From Vitrella brassicaformis CCMP3155 (lineage: Eukaryota; Protista; Chromerida), in contig CDMY01000964.1 of the NCBI GenBank assembly GCA_001179505.1, positions 168,704 through 232,703 of the forward strand: 64,000 bases of DNA, read 5' to 3'. The notes below the pieces were generated by a model. The model was not told the DNA's origin. It was given only the letters and a program-made list of their open reading frames with translations, and ran no database searches. The position numbers were made by a program, and so were the translations under genes. Shown piece after piece: positions 15,642 to 38,900 of this stretch; the first letter of the stretch is position 1, and each line of letters begins with the position of its first letter.

Positions 15642-18398
15642 ATGGCGAAAGAGGTGCAGACGATGCACCAGTGGATGACAGCGGAGCTGGGCCGCATAAT
15701 CGGTAACACAGACACAGCTCAGACAGAACAGACAGACAGACAGACAGACAGACAGGCAGGCAGACAGACACAGAGAGGGAGGGAGGGAGGCAGACACAGA
15801 GAGGGAGGGAGGCTGGGCATGAATGCATTAATTCATTGACACGCACAAGAAGCAGACTGAGTGTGCGTCTGTGTGTCGGGACGCCCTGTGGGGTGTATGT
15901 GTCTGTGTGTTTGTGTCATGGTACCCATGTAATATCATCAGGTGTCGCCGACGAGATGGTGGTAGAGAACGTGGCCACGTACACGAATGAGGCCGAGCTG
16001 CGCGACTTCCTCGAGGCCTTCACAGAGGAGGGACACGCACGCACCGAGATCGCCGCCTTCGTCAAGGAGCTCTTCAGACGGAAGAGAAGGACACCGCCAG
16101 CCGGTCAACAGAACGGGAGTGTGCCTGGTGAGAAGAGAGAGGGAAACAAGAGAGAAGACGTGACGGACGTGAGAATGAATCTTCTCTGTCTGCGTGTGGA
16201 TGTATGTGCCCTTGTCAGCCCCGCCACCCCCACCCCCCGCAGCAGCAGCAGCAGCAGCAGCAGAGGGCCCGGTCCCTCCACCATCAGCGCCATCAGTGCA
16301 CCAGACGGTAAACTATCCCAGCGGCTTCGTCCCTCCCCCTTCCAAGAAACCCCCGCCAAATGTGCTGCCCTCCGACGACCATGACCACCCCCAGCTGCCC
16401 GTTTCTCCCACAACGCACCCCTCCAAACAGCACAAGAAGGGCAAGAAGATCATGCAGTCCGCTATCGGCCATGACTCATCCGCCATCGCGACAGAGAGGA
16501 CACAGAGAAAGGGCAAAGCCGGCGGGGGCGGTGCTGATCAGCAGCGGCTGATGTGCGACTGCCAGGCGCGGGAGCACGAGCTGGTGGGCAACTGTCTGGC
16601 GTGCGGCAAGATCGTGTGTGCGCAGGAGGGGCCGGGTGTGTGTCTGTTTTGTGGGAGGTATGAGGTGCGCGGGAAGGGCCTGGTGGGGAAGTATCTCACG
16701 ACTGGCACTAGTGACGGTGGTGGGGGTGGTGGGGGCGATATGGCGCCTGGCGATGCGGATCTGTATGATGGGCGGAGCGGTGAGGAGAGGGACAAGATCG
16801 ACAAGGCCATCAAACTCAGAGACCAAATCATGGAACAAGGTCCGTGGGGCGGGGCGGTAGGGGGGTGGGATGCACACACATGCAAGATGGTCTGTTTGTC
16901 TCTCTCTCTCTCTCTCTCTGCGTTTCCGTGTGTGTGTCCAGCGCGCAACAAGTCGGTGTTGACAAAAGTGTACGACGACCAGAGTGACTGGTACAGCGCC
17001 GCCAACGACCCATGGCTCACGCGCGAGCAAAGGCTCAAGGCCATACAGAAACAAAAAGAGCTCGAAGACCGAAAACGACAAGAGCAACGTAACCAACACC
17101 CCCCTCCCCCCAACACACACACACACACACACACACTTTGTCCCCATGTGTGTCTGCAGGGAGGGTCAACGTCAACTTCGATTTCGCCGGGCGCCGCATC
17201 ACAGAGGCCGACTCCACCATCGAGCAGGACAACAAGGCCGCCCTGGACGCCTTTGACGATGAAGTCCGCCAGCCGCAGTCCTCCTCTGCCAACCAGAGGA
17301 TCAAGGCGGTCTACGAGCAGCTTGAGGAGGACCGGCGGCTGTTCATGGAGACGCTGCAGTCGCGGATGAGGGCCTTTAACACTGGCACCTGGGTGGAGAG
17401 GGAGGGGAGGGAGGGGGAGGCGGAGGGGGGGAGGAAAATGAGATATGGGGGAGTCGAGACACGGACCGATGTCGAGGTCAGCAGCTTTAGAATACACCTT
17501 CAGACGTACACGCACATACTCTCTCTCTGTGTGTGTGTGTGTGTGTGTGTCTGCAGGAGATGCTTGACGAGCTGGACGTTGCACGCCGCGAGAGGGCAGC
17601 AGAGGAGGCAGCAGCGGCAGCGGCAGAGGCAGCAGAAGCAGAGGCAAGACAGCGCCAGCTCGACCAACACCACGAGCAGCAAGAGGCAGAATCCGCCCTC
17701 TCCGCAGCACCACCAAGCCGCTACACAGACGTCACTGACCGGGGCGTGTGTCTGTCGATGCACCAGCCGTGGGCCTCTCTGCTTGTGGCCGGCTTCAAGC
17801 GAGTCGAGGGACGGTCATGGCCCACAGAGCACAGAGGCAGGCTGTGGGTCCACGCCACGGTCAAGGATCCGCTCCCGGCGCTCACAGAGCAGCTGCTGGC
17901 CCACTACAGCGACATGTATGGCGGGAACCACGCCCCATTGCCAAGCAGCTTCCCCACGGGCATGGTGCTTGGGTGTGTCGATCTGGAAGAGTGCATTACA
18001 CAGGTGGGTGGGTCAGTGTAGTGTGTGTTGATGCGGGTCGATGAGTTGGTGTGTGTGTGTTTGTTAGGAAGAGTGGCAGATTCGTTTGGCGGCTGATCCT
18101 TCTCTGCCGAGGGAGGAGAATGAGAGCGCGTTCCTCTTTGTGTGCAGCAACCCCAGACAGCTGCTCATTCCACATCGCGTAAGTGGGTGGGGTGGTGGTG
18201 GGGCGACCATCCATCCATCCATCCATCCATCCACACATAGACAGACACAGGGCTGTGACGCGTTAATATGTACAGATGTCCGGCGACCACAAGCTATGGA
18301 AGCTGCCGCAAGACAAGCTCAAGCACCTGCAGAAGGCTCTCAGGCCAGTCAAGTGGCCACCACCCCTCCCACCTTCTGATAATAATGCCCCCACCCCC
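15642..18398 (+). CDS. TRIP4: Activating signal cointegrator 1 (ASC-1/TRIP4; C2HC5 zinc finger + ASCH domain); frame open into the N-gap, probably continuous with the downstream AlkB
   Basis: CDCQAREHELVGNCLACGKIVCAQEGPGVCLFCG (zf-C2HC5); MHQPWASLLVAGFKRVEGRSWPTEHRGRLWVHAT and PTGMVLGCVDL (ASCH). Last exon MSGDHKLWKLP..PVKWPPPLPPSDNNAPTP has no stop before the gap at 18399. Confidence 0.92.
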
Positions 18399-18698
18399 NN
18401 NNNNNNNNNNNNNNNNNNNNNNNNNNNNNNNNNNNNNNNNNNNNNNNNNNNNNNNNNNNNNNNNNNNNNNNNNNNNNNNNNNNNNNNNNNNNNNNNNNNN
18501 NNNNNNNNNNNNNNNNNNNNNNNNNNNNNNNNNNNNNNNNNNNNNNNNNNNNNNNNNNNNNNNNNNNNNNNNNNNNNNNNNNNNNNNNNNNNNNNNNNNN
18601 NNNNNNNNNNNNNNNNNNNNNNNNNNNNNNNNNNNNNNNNNNNNNNNNNNNNNNNNNNNNNNNNNNNNNNNNNNNNNNNNNNNNNNNNNNNNNNNNNN
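18399..18698. other. Assembly gap, 300 N (same size at 35174-35473, 36185-36484, 37561-37860, 41208-41507)
   Basis: All five gaps are exactly 300 N, so this is a placeholder length rather than a measured distance. Confidence 0.95.
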
Positions 18699-19968
18699 AC
18701 CCCCTCCCCGCCCACACACAACGGCCTCACCACAGAGATGGCCCAGAACGGCCCACACGAGCCAGATGACGCATCGCCACGAGAGAGGGAGAGGCGGGGC
18801 GGTCGTCTGCAGCTGGTCAAGGAGCCATTTGAGCGGGTTGCCGTCGGTTTTGACCTCTGGCCGACGGGTGAAGGTGCTGAGGATGGTAGTGGTAGTGGGG
18901 GTGGCGGAGGTGAGAAGCGGATGGTGCAGGTGGGCAAGACCAAGTTCGCCAAAGGCGACACCGATGACGGGGTACGTCAGGGCACGCCACACACACCCGA
19001 ACACGCACACACGAACCCAGTGCGTGTCCATCATATGTGTGTGCATGCTGCAGCTAGTCGTGTTGCGTGACGGGATGGTGCTGCTTCGCGAGTACATGGA
19101 CCTCCCCACTCAGCAGAGGATCATTGACACGGTGCGGGAGATGGGCGTCGGCAAGGGCGGCTTCTACACACCCACTTACGAGGCCAAGAAGCAGGGCGAC
19201 CAAAAGGTCTGTCGACCCTTCCCCCCGAACACCCGCAGCCACCCACATACCCCTTTCTCTCTCCGCGTGTGTGCAGTCGTCATTACACTTGCGGATGTTG
19301 TGTCTTGGCAAGCACTGGAACGCCCAGGAGCGTCGGTACGAGACGGAGCGGACAGACGTGGATGGGCTGCCGGTGCACGAGCTGCCAGCCGTCCTCAAGG
19401 ACCTCTACGCGCCTGTCATCAAGGAGACCATTGACAAGCTCAAGAGGTGACTGACTTGTCGACACCCCGGACCACATATGGTCGTGTGTGCATGTGTATG
19501 TGTGTAGGAACAAGAGTCGGTCCAAGTATGCGTGTGGGTCGTTGATAAAGGTGCCGGTCGTCCCGCCTGACATCGCCCTGTGCAACTTCTACTCACACGG
19601 CGGCCGGCTGGGGCTGCACCAAGACCAAGAGGAGAGCGAGGAGTCAAAACGACTCGGTACACACATGGCAAACACACCCACCCATACACCCTTCCAACAT
19701 CTATGCGCCTCTCTCTCCATCAGGCTGCCCGGTCGTCTCTCTGTCCATCGGTGACTCGTGCGACTTCTTCTACTGCGAGAGCCGCCCGTCAGATGACATG
19801 TTTGGGGCGAAGGAGCAGCGTGTTCGCCTCAACTCGGGAGATTTGCTTATCTTCGGCGGCGCGTCGAGGATGATCTACCACGCGGTTGGGCAGATCCACG
19901 CGCACTCGGCGCCGTTTGGGCTGAGAATGAGGGAGGGGAGGCTCAATGTGACGCTGAGGAAGTACTGA
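18699..19968 (+). CDS. AlkB-family 2OG-Fe(II) dioxygenase of the ALKBH1/bacterial AlkB type
   Basis: LRDGMVLLREY..GGFYTP, LHLRMLCLGKHW, PDIALCNFY..GRLGLHQDQEES (HxD), PVVSLSIGDS, SGDLLIFGGASRMIYHAV (distal His), GRLNVTLRKY* (RxxxxxR). All iron and 2OG ligands are present. Confidence 0.92.
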
Positions 19969-20510
19969 GGGAGAGAGGGTGTGATGTGATGGTGTGATGT
20001 GGGTGGCAACTTTATCATTCGTGAGTGAACGAATTAATTCAATGGCAAGAGTACGCCCATATCATATAGATGTCACGCACGCACCCACGCACAGAGAGGT
20101 AGATCGATCGCGTTTCGAAGCCAAACGTCCCCGTGTGCCCTCTGACCGGCAGGCATGAGCGCACTGTCAGATGCCGCTCACAACAAACATCACGCGACAG
20201 ACACCCACAACAAATAGAGAAGAGACCTACGAGACAGACACCAACAGGCAATGTGGCCACCACGTCAACATGGTCGGTCGCGTCTCTTGCACACCGTCCC
20301 GTCCACGAAAAACACAGCTGCCGGCCTGTCTGGGCTGGCTTGTACGACAAACGCACCCAACCGATGACATCCCAACAGACAGACAGACAGGCCGCAGCAA
20401 AAATAGCAGTACAGCAGCAAAGCAAAGCAGGAAGAATGTGTGCGCCGACTATGCGCTTGGATAAAACACACCAACACATATAGATATACTTCCGCAGAAC
20501 ACGCGGATGG

Positions 20511-21946
20511 TCACTTGGTGAAGATCTGCGGCACTGCGGCCGTGTCTGGCCCTGTCGCGACCTGATGGACAGGGGCAGCCACGCTGGCCGGCTGAGCCTG
20601 TCCACGCCTGCTTTCTTGGTACCCGACGACGTGCCTATCACGCACACACACACACACACAAGGCTGAGCCCTCCGAAAAAGGCGAGCTGTTTGTGTGCCT
20701 GCCCACGCCTGTTTTGTCTCTCTGCATGACCTACCGGTATTCCTGCATGGCGCTGCATGGCCAGCACAGCAAGACGACGCACCGATCACCGCAGCCGTCG
20801 CTCGCCTCGATGTCGTAATGGCTGACAGAAGCGCAGACACACATACACACAGAGTATACTCAGACAGACACGCAGACCCCCTCACTTGTCTGCGTGTGAT
20901 GGGCTCACATCTAGCTGACCTTCTGAGCTCCGTCCGATAGCGGCGGTAGATTCTGAACATGCCGATGCCGACAACAGGGGGCATTATGCACAGGATCCAG
21001 AGTCTCGACAGCTCGTCGGGCGGGGTTAGGCACAAAGCCCAGATGACGAAACCCCAGAAGGCCAGCGGGATGCCGCACAGCAGCAGCACACCCCACCACA
21101 GCGACCTCAGACCCGCACCCGCCATCGCCCGGGCCTACACACGCATTCAGATACGTGCACTCGTAGCATGGTGTGGTGTGTGTGTGGGGGGTGGGATCAT
21201 TATACCTTCAGGTAGCCCAGAATGGGTGCGAAGAGCCATCCGACGGTTCCCAGCAAGACATCCGGCATACGGGAGAAGCAGCTGAACAGACCGACGTTCC
21301 ACCGACCTACACACACGTCCATCCATCAATCCATCCATCCATTTATCGAGAAAGGCAGGCAGTCCTCGGTACATGTGTACCCGTGGGAGTCCGTTGCCCA
21401 CTGCTCTGTGCCGGTCTGACGGCCCAGTCTTCCGCAGGTGCCGTATATTTGGTGCCTGGGGCTACCTCTCGAATGTACAGCTTGTTGCCTTTGAAGACCT
21501 GGTTGTTGAGCTCGCGGACGGCACGCTGCGCCTCCTCAGCACTCTCATACTCACACACACTGACACACACACACCAATCACATCAGAAGTGTGTGCCCCT
21601 CTTTGTCCTGTCTGTCTGTCTGTCTGTCTTGACCATGCTCCGATGGGGCCTTGCTCATATCGCGACCTCAAAATCTGCACCCTCGTCGCAGGGCACCTCA
21701 TGTGTTTCGCAACTTCCTCCTGCGCAGAACGGGGCCATTTGGGAACGGGGTCATGAACAAAGTGCGCAGGTCTGTCTGTCTGTCTGTCTGTCTGTGTGTC
21801 TATACCTGTGTCGCCGTCTTGGGCAGGTGCTGCACGAACACCTTCCTCTCAGCATTCGTGATACCGTCATCGGCCGTCTCGGCAGCCGCCTCTCTCATGG
21901 CACCGATGGTACCGCGGCCGCCGCCCAAGATCTCAGCCAGCTCCAT
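20511..21946 (-). CDS. RRM + PLAC8-domain fusion protein, copy A
   Basis: Spliced: RKVFVQHLPKTATQ|EEVAKHM..GPIGA|CVCEYESAEEAQRAVRELNNQVFKGNKLYIRE..TPT G|RWNVGLFSCF..ILGYLK|ARAMAG..YRTELRS|HYDIEASDGCGDRCVVLLCWPCSAMQEYR|HVVG..PQIFTK*. All junctions are GT-AG and in phase. The start codon is tentative. Confidence 0.75.
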
Positions 21947-32910: not shown

Positions 32911-35900
32911 GGTATATGGCGTACCAGTGCTCGTCATGCCGTTTGTCGCGTTGGGCTGCGACGGCGCCGGCGCCACGACGGCAGGGCGCACCACAGATGG
33001 AGTAGCTGCACAGCACAGCACACCATGACCCAGCCCAACACGTACACGTCCGACGGCTCACTCATTCTCTCATTGCCTTCCTGTCCTCGCTGTGCGTCGC
33101 CTACCGATCTTGGGGTTGACGTTGAGTGCCGCAAACGGCACAGGTGACGGCTGGTGGTGGTGGTGGTAGTACGTCGACTGCTGGGGCTGAGCAATGCGCG
33201 CAGCCTGGACCACCGGGCGAAGCACATGAGCTGGGCTATCGGTGTGCTGCACCACAGGGGCCGTCTCGCGGGCGGCGTGTGGGGCCGCAGACGGGGGATC
33301 CACACGTCTCGACGCATCAACTCTGATGGATTCCATCCACACAGAAGGGAATGGGTGTCATTATGTATGTGTATCTGTGGCGCCTCTCTCACCTCGCTGA
33401 CACGGGCGCCTCGGCAAATGGGCGTCTGCTGGTGGCGGCATTGCTGATCGAGAGAGGCGCCACCGTGACGGAGCCCCCACCAACACCAGCACCAGCACCA
33501 GCATCCAATCTGCCACCTGTAAGCGAGACAATGCACAACGGAGTGCTTTCCAACAAAGTGAAGGTCGCGATTTGTCTTGTTCTTACCGAATGGCTGTGGC
33601 TGTGCGCAGTTCGCTGCGAGCGGAGCGGGTCCGCGCGCCTTGGGGCGGGCCGTGTTCATCACTCTTGCCCCACCGGCAACTTTAACGACCTGGGATTCGT
33701 CGCTGCCTAGCAGGTCGCGCATCGCGGCAGAGAGCGACGGGCCGCCCGCGGGCTCTCCAGCTGGCTGCTCGCTGGTGCGTGGGCGGGGTGCGGGCGACGG
33801 GCGGTCCTCCTCCCCTTCCTCGACCACACGCGGTGTCTCCTCGGCCAAAGCGGGACGCAGCTCCAAGGCTTCGTCTGTGTCGCTCGCCGCCTCGCCTCCA
33901 CATAGCTCGCCTGGCAGCCCACCAACACCAACGCCCCCACCCACCCTCACGACCTGGGATTCGTCGACGTCTAGCAGGGCGCGCATCTTGGCAGAGGGCT
34001 CCCCAGCTGGCTGCTCTCGTCCGTCTGCGATGTGATGCGGCTGTGGGATGGGGGCCGACCCAGGGGAGCCCGACAGCTGACAGAGCAGAGAACGTATTAA
34101 TTAACAGGTCGATAGACAAACATGTTTGCTGGCTGAAGCCATCAAGTCGATCAGTCTGTATGCATCTCACTGACTCAGTGACTCACTAGCTAACTTTATG
34201 TATCAGTGACTTACGTACGTACGTACCTGTAGAGGCGGTGAGTACATGTGTGTGACGTTGTCACCGCCACCTTGGCCCGTCACCTGCGCCATCACCGGTG
34301 GACGTGTCTGCACGCCCCTGGCCGTGCTGGGGGCGCTGGCGTAGGTGGCCACGTGGGGAGGCACCACAGAGTAGCCCGTCGGCGGCAGGAGGGGCATTAA
34401 GCTCGGCGGAATTGAGGCACCAGCATGGGACCGGAAGGTCCCAGTAGCCGCAGGCTGCTTGGGGAAGCAGCAGGGCGAGAAGCTGCAGCAGGGCGAGAGG
34501 CTCGGCTGCTGCTCCAGCTGCTGGTGATGGCCACGGTGTGCCCGATCTGCGGCGAATGGACCGTAGGCCACAGACCGCTGGCAAACACAGACAGACAGAC
34601 ACAGACAGCAGACTGACATGACTGACATGAAATGTCTCTCTCTGTGAGTGAGTTGGTCGTCTGTCTTAACTGCTCACATTTCCTCTGATGGGCGGTGTGC
34701 GGGGCGAGTCGACGCCCGACGGCGGCTGTGTGTGAGTGGCGGGACGGCCAGTGGCCGGCACGGCTTTGGACCGGGGGTCGTTGTTGTTGTTGGTGGCGCG
34801 GGCGTGGATACCTCCGCCGTACGATTGGGCGACGGAGGACGGGATGGCTCCACCCGGAAGACCAGCAGCTGAGGGAGGGCAGCAAACAAACGGAGGGAGG
34901 GAGAGGAGGAAGGAAGAAGGGCCGTGCGTGCCTGACACTGTCAAGGCCTGGCTGCGCTGCGCTGCGGTGTGGCGTGTCGTACCCTGCATGAGTTTCTGGC
35001 GGTAGCAGTGACGACGCTTGTCAAGCAGGTAGAACCTGAGTGAGTGGAAAGGAAAGACCACACCAACAGGGGCAGAGAATGTCTGTCAGCAGCAGTGTCG
35101 GTGTTTCTTTCGTGTGAGTGTGGCTTACGTTGTGGTGACGCCGTTGTGTTTGTTCTGCTGCAGCTGTGAAACGNNNNNNNNNNNNNNNNNNNNNNNNNNN
35201 NNNNNNNNNNNNNNNNNNNNNNNNNNNNNNNNNNNNNNNNNNNNNNNNNNNNNNNNNNNNNNNNNNNNNNNNNNNNNNNNNNNNNNNNNNNNNNNNNNNN
35301 NNNNNNNNNNNNNNNNNNNNNNNNNNNNNNNNNNNNNNNNNNNNNNNNNNNNNNNNNNNNNNNNNNNNNNNNNNNNNNNNNNNNNNNNNNNNNNNNNNNN
35401 NNNNNNNNNNNNNNNNNNNNNNNNNNNNNNNNNNNNNNNNNNNNNNNNNNNNNNNNNNNNNNNNNNNNNNNNNCAGAGACAGAGAGACATGGATGCCTGC
35501 GTGTGTGTGTGTGTGTGTCTATGTCTTGCCTGAATCAGTTCGAGCTCCCTCCAGTTGCGGCACCGCTCACAGGACGCCAACCAGGAAAAGAACCGGGAAA
35601 CTAGCTGCAGAGAAATGACAGATGAGATATGACAGGCACTCTCCCATCCGGCGACACACAGACAGACACACAGACAGACACATGTGGTACCTCGCAGGAT
35701 GAGGAGTGTCCCCCCTCCGACAAACGCGGCGGCCGCTCGGGGTCCATGACCTGGAAGTGCTGATACCTGCACACACACACACACGCACATGCGCCCACAT
35801 CACTTGCTGTCTGTCTGTCTGTCTGGTCCCTCCCCTCAGTCCCTCCCTCACTCACCAAGGGTGCTGACGGATCTGGTGGATTTGGAGACGTTGTTCGGGC

Positions 35901-38900
35901 CGCGGATGAGATCGGCAGCTCCTTCAGATACACAACGGGGCAGCTGATCGATCGAAGACACGTAAGTAAGCATTTACCATTCATCCAGTGAGTCAGTCCA
36001 GTGTGTGAAGCATGTGATGCATGGGATGTGACGTCTGCTTTCGTGTGGATACCTCGTAGTCGCCTTTTGAGTATCTTGCCGTAGAGCCTGGCCGTGTCGC
36101 GGTCCTCGAAGGGCAGGTGGCCGCATATCATTGCGTACAACACCACTCTGCAGTCAATGCAATGCACCCACAACACAACACAACNNNNNNNNNNNNNNNN
36201 NNNNNNNNNNNNNNNNNNNNNNNNNNNNNNNNNNNNNNNNNNNNNNNNNNNNNNNNNNNNNNNNNNNNNNNNNNNNNNNNNNNNNNNNNNNNNNNNNNNN
36301 NNNNNNNNNNNNNNNNNNNNNNNNNNNNNNNNNNNNNNNNNNNNNNNNNNNNNNNNNNNNNNNNNNNNNNNNNNNNNNNNNNNNNNNNNNNNNNNNNNNN
36401 NNNNNNNNNNNNNNNNNNNNNNNNNNNNNNNNNNNNNNNNNNNNNNNNNNNNNNNNNNNNNNNNNNNNNNNNNNNNNNNNNNNNGCAGCAGTGTCGGTGT
36501 TTCTTTCGTGTGAGTGTGGCTTACGTTGTGGTGACGCCGTTGTGTTTGTTCTGCTGCAGCTGTGAAACGATGTCCCGCCGGCTGAGCTTCCACAGACGCG
36601 CACACTCGTCCAGGACCTCATCGTCCAACTGCACCGCATCCCATCGACAGACACACCCAGAGACAGAGAGACATGGATGCCTGCGTGTGTGTGTGTGTGT
36701 GTCTATGTCTTGCCTGAATCAGTTCGAGCTCCCTCCAGTTGCGGCACCGCTCACAGGACGCCAACCAGGAAAAGAACCGGGAAACTAGCTGCAGAGAAAT
36801 GACAGATGAGATATGACAGGCACTCTCCCATCCGGCGACACACAGACAGACACACAGACAGACACATGTGGTACCTCGCAGGATGAGGAGTGTCCCCCCT
36901 CCGACAAACGCGGCGGCCGCTCGGGGTCCATGACCTGGAAGTGCTGATACCTGCACACACACACACACGCACATGCGCCCACATCACTTGCTGTCTGTCT
37001 GTCTGTCTGGTCCCTCCCCTCAGTCCCTCCCTCACTCACCAAGGGTGCTGACGGATCTGGTGGATTTGGAGACGTTGTTCGGGCCGCGGATGAGATCGGC
37101 AGCTCCTTCAGATACACAACGGGGCAGCTGATCGATCGAAGACACGTAAGTAAGCACAAACCATTCATCCAGTGAGTCAGTCCAGTGTGTGAAGCATGTG
37201 ATGCATGGGATGTGACGTCTGCTTTCGTGTGGATACCTCGTAGTCGCCTTTGAGTATCTTGCCGTAGAGCCTGGCCGTGTCGCGGTCCTCGAAGGGCAGG
37301 TGGCCGCATATCATTGCGTACAACACCACTCTGCAATGCACCCACAACACAACACAACACAACACAGACATGCACGCATTCATTGTGTGATGGATGCGAT
37401 GCCACGCCACGCGTGTCTGTCTGTCGCTGGTCTGTCTGTCAACTCACCCGCACGACCACACGTCGCTGCCGCCGGGCTCGTAGTGATGGCCTGCCAGCAT
37501 CTGCATGACAACACAACACACCATTCGTTAACTAACGACCAAGAGAGCTTTGGGTGAGGANNNNNNNNNNNNNNNNNNNNNNNNNNNNNNNNNNNNNNNN
37601 NNNNNNNNNNNNNNNNNNNNNNNNNNNNNNNNNNNNNNNNNNNNNNNNNNNNNNNNNNNNNNNNNNNNNNNNNNNNNNNNNNNNNNNNNNNNNNNNNNNN
37701 NNNNNNNNNNNNNNNNNNNNNNNNNNNNNNNNNNNNNNNNNNNNNNNNNNNNNNNNNNNNNNNNNNNNNNNNNNNNNNNNNNNNNNNNNNNNNNNNNNNN
37801 NNNNNNNNNNNNNNNNNNNNNNNNNNNNNNNNNNNNNNNNNNNNNNNNNNNNNNNNNNNNGTTTGTTCTGCTGCAGCTGTGAAACGATGTCCCGCCGGCT
37901 GAGCTTCCACAGACGCGCACACTCGTCCAGGACCTCATCGTCCAACTGCACCGCATCCCATCGACAGACACACACAGAGACAGAGAGACATGGATGCCTG
38001 CGTGTGTGTGTGTGTGTGTCTATGTCTTGCCTGAATCAGTTCGAGCTCCCTCCAGTTGCGGCACCGCTCACAGGACGCCAACCAGGAAAAGAACCGGGAA
38101 ACTAGCTGCAGAGAAATGACAGATGAGATATGACAGGCACTCTCCCATCCGGCGACACACAGACAGACACACAGACAGACACATGTGGTACCTCGCAGGA
38201 TGAGGAGTGTCCCCCCTCCGACAAACGCGGCGGCCGCTCGGGGTCCATGACCTGGAAGTGCTGATACCTGCACACACACACACACGCACATGCGCCCACA
38301 TCACTTGCTGTCTGTCTGTCTGTCTGTCTGGTCCCTCCCCTCAGTCCCTCCCTCACTCACCAAGGGTGCTGACGGATCTGGTGGATTTGGAGACGTTGTT
38401 CGGGCCTCACCGTGAGCATGCCGCGGATGAGATCGGCAGCTCCTTCAGATACACAACGGGGCAGCTGATCGATCGAAGACACGTAAGTAAGCATTTACCA
38501 TTCATCCAGTGAGTCAGTCCAGTGTGTGAAGCATGTGATGCATGGGATGTGACGTCTGCTTTCGTGTGGATACCTCGTAGTCGCCTTTTGAGTATCTTGC
38601 CGTAGAGCCTGGCCGTGTCGCGGTCCTCGAAGGGCAGGTGGCCGCATATCATTGCGTACAACACCACTCTGCAGTCAATGCAATGCACCCACAACACAAC
38701 ACAACACAGACATGCAGACATGCACGCATTCATTGTGTGATGGATGCGATGCCACGCCACGCGTGTCTGTCTGTCGCTGGTCTGTCTGTCAACTCACCCG
38801 CACGACCACACGTCGCTGCCGCCGGGCTCGTAGTGATGGCCTGCCAGCATCTGCATGACAACACAACACACCATTCGTTAACTAACGACCAAGAGAGCTT

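Follow-up and report, generated by a model that had tools for sequence, protein, structure and literature searches.

Do the TRIP4-like and AlkB-like coding sequences that face each other across an assembly gap in the chromerid Vitrella brassicaformis CCMP3155 belong to one gene or to two? The window analysed here is a stretch of 64,000 nucleotides (nt) of contig CDMY01000964.1 (assembly GCA_001179505.1, positions 168,704 to 232,703 of the forward strand), and the locus in question lies at window positions 15642–19968. An earlier, sequence-only reading of this stretch had proposed that the gap hides one zinc finger–ASCH–AlkB polypeptide. Our comparison of sequences suggests that 15642–19968 is very probably one gene with a fused TRIP4–AlkB reading frame: fused homologues, exon collinearity and a kept linker motif (DLWP) speak for the proposed polypeptide, while nothing bridges the gap itself. 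We rebuilt the gene model from the window sequence and the spliced RNA contigs of run X3, conducted searches exon by exon, and used the fold of a Hematodinium homologue as a proxy for the joined Vitrella protein. The contig sets X1, X2 and X7 are unspliced and DNA-like.

Both halves of the gene are open towards the gap. The last TRIP4 exon (E8) reads MSGDHKLWKL...APTP in frame 0 and enters the N run without a stop, and the first exon after the gap (A1) is open in nominally the same frame and splices into a complete AlkB domain through four further exons, as the sequence-only reading had described. The shared frame arises because 300, the length of the N run, is divisible by 3, and says nothing about continuity. 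Seven GT..AG introns are skipped by X3 RNA contigs exactly at the exon borders; on the AlkB side, the GT..AG introns at 18972–19053, 19207–19276, 19447–19507 and 19657–19723 are spliced out in these contigs. The junction between exons E5 and E6 was inferred, and the 147-nt exon E4 agrees with X3 record 18, in which 149 letters lie between positions 16837 and 17160. The RNA contigs also indicate long untranslated regions (UTRs), i.e. at least 188 nt at the 5' end and at least about 750 nt at the 3' end. X3 record 20, which is 1744 nt long, has reached only its letter 1126 at window position 20100.

The same architecture is found uninterrupted in other eukaryotes. A search of 1.84 billion representative proteins, with only the ASCH exon as query, retrieved TRIP4 homologues, many of them with 300–400 residues beyond ASCH. 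According to Pfam, the proteins P0032, P0078, P0087, P0116, P0121, P0124 and P0151 each combine zf-C2HC5, TRIP4_3rd, ASCH and 2OG-FeII_Oxy_2 in a single chain, as does the partial sequence P0101; a local profile adds the fused proteins P0041, P0063, P0177, P0178 and P0187, so that 13 of the roughly 181 retrieved proteins are fused. Their sources include Hematodinium (P0151 and P0187, transcriptome shotgun assembly (TSA) GEMP01; PMC6642578), the apicomplexan Digyalum oweni (P0032 and P0177, TSA GHVL01), Durusdinium trenchii (CAK9102336.1, partial), Lankesteria (P0063), an MMETSP culture (P0078) and environmental samples (P0087/P0178, P0116, P0121 and P0124). The fused open reading frames (ORFs) are complete in the Hematodinium and Digyalum transcripts, and on environmental contigs P0121 and P0178 (the latter in three samples) are encoded without interruption. 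The architecture named in the sequence-only reading (zf-C2HC5 + ASCH + AlkB) thus occurs in related lineages as single transcripts or ORFs. Chromerids branch between dinoflagellates and core apicomplexans, so that the fused state brackets Vitrella.

We then compared the window with a fusion profile built from nine fused proteins (875 positions). Twelve window exons lie collinear on it, with E6 reaching 157 bits (profile positions are given in the table below). Identity between the window and the fused homologues is 45–57% in ASCH and 39–51% in the last AlkB exon. The linker is also comparable. Homologue linkers are low-complexity or disordered and often proline-rich, and a DLWP motif occurs in those of P0078, P0087, P0116, P0121, P0124 (as DIWP), P0177 (as DIYP) and P0187, 37–45 residues before the first AlkB strand. 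In Vitrella, exon A1 is poorly conserved overall but contains GFDLWPTG, with FDLWP 37 residues before the AlkB core; the distance from the KW at the end of ASCH to DLWP is at least 63 residues, at the long end among the fused family. Human TRIP4 ends about 20 residues after its KIWKL motif, and 70 of 101 unfused TRIP4s end between 9 residues before and 12 residues after profile position 600. Exon E8 is still open about 9 residues past this position, in a proline-rich tail like the homologue linkers. Conservation of DLWP, together with an E8 that stays open into a linker-like tract, favours fusion. In short, Vitrella shares with the fused family the domain order, the collinear exons and a disordered linker with DLWP, and differs from it in that its linker is interrupted by an unread gap and its single chain is predicted from comparison.

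The genome offers no second candidate for either half. Within the 72.7-Mb Vitrella genome, zf-C2HC5 occurs at a single locus; AlkB occurs at four loci, and only the present one fits the fused AlkB module (105.6, 44.6, 37.6 and 32.4 bits versus at most 10.8). The other AlkB-family loci (G000:C343:20601-21164, C385:363390-364170 and C862:6751-7134) do not resemble that module. The only TRIP4 and the only fusion-type AlkB are thus adjacent, on the same strand, in the order of the fused family and each open towards the gap. Two readings remain: the gene is still fused, or it has been split exactly in the linker.

Domain searches against Pfam identify zf-C2HC5 in E3 (PF06221, E 3.4e-12, 46.6 bits versus a cut-off of 25.8), TRIP4_3rd in E4 (PF23134, E 1.1e-6, 29.4 versus 27.7 bits), ASCH in E6 (PF04266, E 4.8e-9, 37.3 versus 21.2 bits) and 2OG-FeII_Oxy_2 in A5 and A4 (66.5 and 27.9 bits, respectively, versus a cut-off of 31.2). 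TRI4_N is weak on E2 in Pfam (11.9 bits, E 0.23), and this exon matches the fusion profile at E 1e-8. The signature residues of both domains are in place. The ASCH octapeptide GxKxxExR, defined in a recent preprint (bioRxiv 10.64898/2026.02.27.708502), is intact in the E6 translation as GFKRVEGR; its Lys and Glu are required for the human TRIP4 ASCH to lower N4-acetylcytidine (ac4C) in tRNA (same preprint). In the AlkB domain, the Fe(II) ligands H-x-D...H and the 2-oxoglutarate ligands R-x5-R are likewise intact, as LHQD in A4 and YHAV plus RLNVTLR in A5.

The sequence-only reading had classified the AlkB partner as ALKBH1-like and not ALKBH3-like. The second half of this statement stands, and the first is true in the plant sense only. 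The closest solved AlkB is rice OsALKBH1 (5XEG/5XOI), both for exon A5 and, by phmmer, for the AlkB module of P0124 (E 2.8e-45); the literature names the 5XEG/5XOI protein rice ALKBH1 (PMC8118384), and what was crystallized is the dioxygenase alone. We folded the part from ASCH to the C-terminus of the Hematodinium homologue with an 11-row alignment. In this model, which has a predicted template modelling score (pTM) of 0.54, the predicted local distance difference test (pLDDT) reaches 73–89 in ASCH and 80–95 in AlkB; the linker between them is disordered, and the DLWP residues form a small island at pLDDT of at least 50. As to the double-stranded beta-helix fold expected of AlkB dioxygenases, the AlkB part of this Hematodinium model matches 5XOI with a template modelling (TM) score of 0.88. 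In Foldseek comparisons of the folded homologue, OsALKBH1 gives TM 0.88 at 33% identity and Escherichia coli AlkB gives TM 0.86, and the ASCH domain matches human TRIP4 (9KYK/8YFI) at TM 0.79–0.86 and 40–42% identity. By contrast, mammalian ALKBH1 is a poor match (human and mouse TM 0.38–0.48, 15–18% identity, phmmer E 8e-7 versus 2.8e-45). ALKBH2/3 reach TM of about 0.62; the ALKBH3 structures 8JNK/8JNR give TM 0.63–0.64 at 15% identity, and phmmer returns no ALKBH3 match at E 1e-3. OsALKBH1 itself was reportedly described by Zhou and colleagues in 2018 as a DNA N6-methyladenine (6mA) demethylase.

The nominal length of the gap is uninformative: all five gaps of the window are exactly 300 N, and the genome paper reports 931,689 N for 4177 contigs in 1064 scaffolds, i.e. 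about 299 N per gap (PMC4501334). The sequence-only reading was correct in taking 300 N as a placeholder, since the flanks of the gap at 35174–35473 match 36485–36569 and 36658–37057, which leaves 88 nt between them. This other gap lies in a segment (34774–38378) that is present three times, interleaved with three 300-N gaps, and in which the assembly may be collapsed or expanded; the right flank at 35474 recurs at 36658 and 37975 with 99–100% identity. At the TRIP4–AlkB gap, none of the X1, X2, X7 and X3 sets contains a bridging contig. On the right side, contigs end inside the gap after 11 letters in X1, about 6 in X2 and 4 in X3; on the left side, the X3 RNA contig on E8 (record 19) ends at 18366. 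RNA reaches the gap from both sides. Where the original assembly ended, an RNA contig and two independent DNA sets end as well, which points to an assembly break rather than a transcription start. Both flanks are single-copy in the genome and no alternative contig fills the gap, which probably hides further C-rich, proline-coding linker that defeats short-read assembly.

Several candidate routes through the gap were pursued. A loose end at 18361 (X3 and X7), considered as a second gap-edge context, was rejected as an 18-nt chance match to G000:C243. A metagenome contig (L003:1700-3671, ENA ERZ893784, k147_3867159) aligns with window 16256–18212 at a mean column identity of 90% (88–97% at the protein level in the ASCH exon) and shares its TRIP4 gene down to the introns, evidence of another, uncultured organism of the Vitrella type. 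It breaks off short of the gap, within the (CATC)n repeat of intron 7. Neither an exact 32-mer from A1 nor a scan with a protein pattern gave a match in JGI metagenome contigs. Protein searches for ORFs with E8 and/or A1 (147–467 and 50–159 residues) also found none, a result that weighs little as the collections apparently lack Vitrella's own or near-identical proteins.

Several observations weigh against a single fused gene. No read, contig or protein spans the gap, and an open frame without a stop across it is a prediction. Intergenic spaces in Vitrella are short (median 92 bp; PMC4501334), which makes a small one at this place conceivable. A stand-alone AlkB of 316 residues could start at an in-frame Met (18738) that lies 13 codons beyond the gap. 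Unfused TRIP4s (P0034 and P0179/P0180) occur among the related sequences. The depth of X3 RNA contigs rises from values of 15, 31 and 20 along TRIP4 to 71 over AlkB, a step that mildly favours a separate or additional AlkB transcript, although 3' bias also fits; as a test of one versus two transcripts, depth was set aside as ambiguous because it already varies twofold within TRIP4. At the functional level, human TRIP4 and ALKBH3 are mutually exclusive on ASCC3, and TRIP4 knockout does not sensitize cells to methyl methanesulfonate (PMC10076317), so that the functional analogy is not straightforward.

One rival reading is a secondary fission of an ancestral fusion in Vitrella, in which the gap would hold the stop and 3' end of TRIP4 plus the promoter and 5' UTR of a separate AlkB gene starting at Met 18738. 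The rise in RNA depth from about 20–31 to 71, the position of the Met, the compact genome and the unfused relatives all fit this alternative, and the failure to find any A1-containing protein in either size range leaves the databases undecided. However, the RNA contig on the AlkB side extends at least 43 nt beyond Met 18738 in the 5' direction and stops where the DNA contigs stop too; E8 is already in a linker-like proline tract without a stop; the DLWP motif is kept; and UTRs as long as those at the two ends of the locus would require the gap to hold several hundred bases. We consider a fission unlikely.

Even less probable is that the gap is spurious and its flanks overlap. The sequence-only reading had pointed out that ACCCCC flanks both sides and had proposed to collapse it into the in-frame linker ...DNNAPTPSPPTHN... 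The hexamer is indeed the longest suffix/prefix overlap of the flanks, its collapse keeps the frame, and the other gap discussed above stands for only 88 nt. However, in a C-rich tract an overlapping hexamer composed of C and A is at chance level, and the junction, once collapsed, would be a unique sequence at k=31 that contigs should cross; instead, X1, X2 and X3 contigs end 4–11 nt into the gap and record 19 stops short of it. The collapse is thus very unlikely. That the two contigs are not true neighbours, as the unbridged gap would allow, is hardly worth entertaining, given that the single TRIP4 and the single fused-type AlkB of the 72.7-Mb genome would then have met by accident in family order and orientation, each open to the gap. 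A fused gene remains our preferred reading.

Relationships among the homologues add context to this reading. The ASCH exon was placed in a tree with 160 homologues, which resolves relationships poorly; in it, the window sequence clusters with P0001, the nearest full-length rows are the fused Digyalum proteins, and the fused proteins do not form one supported clade. In Hematodinium (GEMP01), one gene has three transcript forms: a TRIP4-only protein of 522 residues (P0186) and fused proteins of 764 (P0187) and 737 residues (P0151). P0186 is a complete ORF that equals P0187 up to residue 501 and then diverges, and in P0151 a stretch of 27 residues containing DLWP is missing. These forms suggest that splicing is regulated at the fusion junction. 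By analogy with Hematodinium, Vitrella may also produce TRIP4-only or AlkB-only isoforms alongside the fused one.

Two further features of the family concern its AlkB end. In P0087 and P0178, HQG replaces the iron-binding H-x-D (HQD), and their dioxygenase may be inactive; Vitrella, by contrast, keeps HQD. Six other homologues (P0035 from Blabericola, P0044, P0059, P0143, P0119 and P0039) continue for 200–350 residues after ASCH with no Pfam AlkB match, and P0035 and P0086 match the fusion profile only to about position 744. These long tails that lack AlkB may be degenerate AlkB remnants or other C-terminal modules.

The features of the locus are listed in the table. Microsatellites at window 15718–15816, 16216–16272, 16886–16931 and 18197–18240, in introns and exon 3, are of the types (CAGA)n/(GGGA)n, (GCA)n coding for poly-Ala, (CT)n and (CATC)n, and public short-read contigs break at each.

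Table. Features of the candidate TRIP4–AlkB gene of V. brassicaformis, in window coordinates, with positions on the fusion profile.
Feature	Coordinates	Strand	Profile positions	Evidence
TRIP4 exon E1	15642..15702	+		Start ATG at 15642; X3 RNA joint 15701->15941, GT..AG; sequence reading
TRIP4 exon E2, TRI4_N-like N-terminal region	15942..16127	+	30-80	X3 contig piece 15941-16127
TRIP4 exon E3, zf-C2HC5 zinc finger	16219..16839	+	85-164	PF06221; acceptor 16218/16219 inferred from frame and AG
TRIP4 exon E4, TRIP4_3rd domain	16942..17088	+	222-267	PF23134; X3 record 18
TRIP4 exon E5, lasso/linker region	17160..17392	+	272-312	X3 record 18 piece 17160-17389
TRIP4 exon E6, ASCH with octapeptide GFKRVEGR	17557..18003	+	404-531	PF04266; X3 joint 18001->18066
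TRIP4 exon E7, ASCH continued	18068..18178	+	532-567	X3 joints on both sides
Exon E8, ASCH end (HKLWKL...LRPVKW) then proline-rich tail, open to gap	18276..18398	+	569-606	X3 joint 18178->18276
Assembly gap, 300 N placeholder	18399..18698	.		X1, X2 and X3 right-flank contigs end 4-11 nt inside
Exon A1, low-complexity linker with FDLWP, open at gap	18699..18971	+		X3 record 20 spliced at 18971
AlkB exon A2, start of dioxygenase fold	19054..19206	+	652-697	X3 joints; profile match E 3e-14
AlkB exon A3	19277..19446	+	697-750	X3 joints
AlkB exon A4, iron ligands H-x-D (LHQD)	19508..19656	+	763-794	PF13532 E 3.2e-6; X3 joints
AlkB exon A5, second His (YHAV) and R-x5-R (RLNVTLR)	19724..19968	+	800-875	PF13532 E 4.9e-18; 5XEG E 8e-13
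Stop TGA	19966-19968	+		End of A5
3' UTR, at least about 750 nt	19969..20718	+		End coordinate extrapolated; X3 record 20

We also compared the Vitrella locus with known systems. Human TRIP4/ASC-1, a subunit of the ASC-1/RQT complex that corresponds to yeast Rqt4, has the same zf-C2HC5, TRIP4_3rd and ASCH with G-x-K-x-x-E-x-R, but lacks a catalytic partner in cis. The human ASCC3–ALKBH3 repair module likewise gives the ASCC helicase complex a functional link to an AlkB dioxygenase; there, by contrast, ALKBH3 is a separate protein with a distant AlkB that excludes TRIP4, its competitor for ASCC3 in vitro (PMC10076317), while here both parts would be in one gene. Among plants, a Ginkgo survey lists GbALKBH1B with zf-C2HC5 (PMC13296198), and an ESM Atlas cluster of 54 proteins, mostly Streptophyta, combines AlkB, TRIP4_3rd and zf-C2HC5 (a lead, score 0.82). 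The sequence-only reading suggested that such a fusion had not been described. It has been: an August 2026 preprint already mentions eukaryotic TRIP4-clade ASCH fused to an AlkB-related dioxygenase (bioRxiv 10.64898/2026.08.01.741249); an earlier review of ASCH and AlkB contexts does not mention it (PMC4738411). Full-text literature searches found no functional study of a TRIP4–AlkB fusion. The architecture is thus not new, and the Vitrella locus is a candidate member of a known, little-studied fusion family.

If the frame is continuous, the gene product would be at least 972 residues long and comprise a TRI4_N-like region, zf-C2HC5, TRIP4_3rd, ASCH, a disordered, proline-rich linker with DLWP and the AlkB dioxygenase; the gap would then lie inside C-rich linker-coding sequence, which would explain why assemblies break there. 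The Vitrella genome contains two loci for dual-Sec63 helicases (the Brr2 and ASCC3/Slh1 type). In the human ASCC3–TRIP4 structure, TRIP4 is anchored by its zinc finger to the C-terminal helicase cassette, which places ASCH at the DNA exit (PMC10076317). By analogy, the zinc finger of the fused protein would dock on the C-terminal cassette of ASCC3/Slh1, ASCH would be placed at the nucleic-acid exit of the helicase, and the tethered AlkB could oxidatively dealkylate bases on the emerging single strand, be it mRNA from collided ribosomes or single-stranded DNA (ssDNA).

A natural fusion is classic 'Rosetta stone' evidence of joint action. We tentatively suggest that TRIP4–AlkB could be an old and widely kept subunit (in dinoflagellates, apicomplexans, chromerids and plants) that hard-wires dealkylation to the ASCC3/Slh1 exit, such that a single reaction would rescue collided ribosomes and repair alkylated mRNA or ssDNA; the human competition between TRIP4 and ALKBH3 might then be a split version of this arrangement, and DLWP a docking element for helicase or ribosome. 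Recent preprints report that ASCH domains, including that of TRIP4, lower tRNA ac4C, and the fusion may thus join two base-'eraser' activities. The link between the human ASC-1/RQT complex and AlkB repair is debated, and a fusion found across Myzozoa and plants suggests that the coupling is old; the fused proteins offer a tractable means to test the substrate at the helicase exit. For Vitrella, the practical outcome is a revised gene model and a clearly delimited gap to close.

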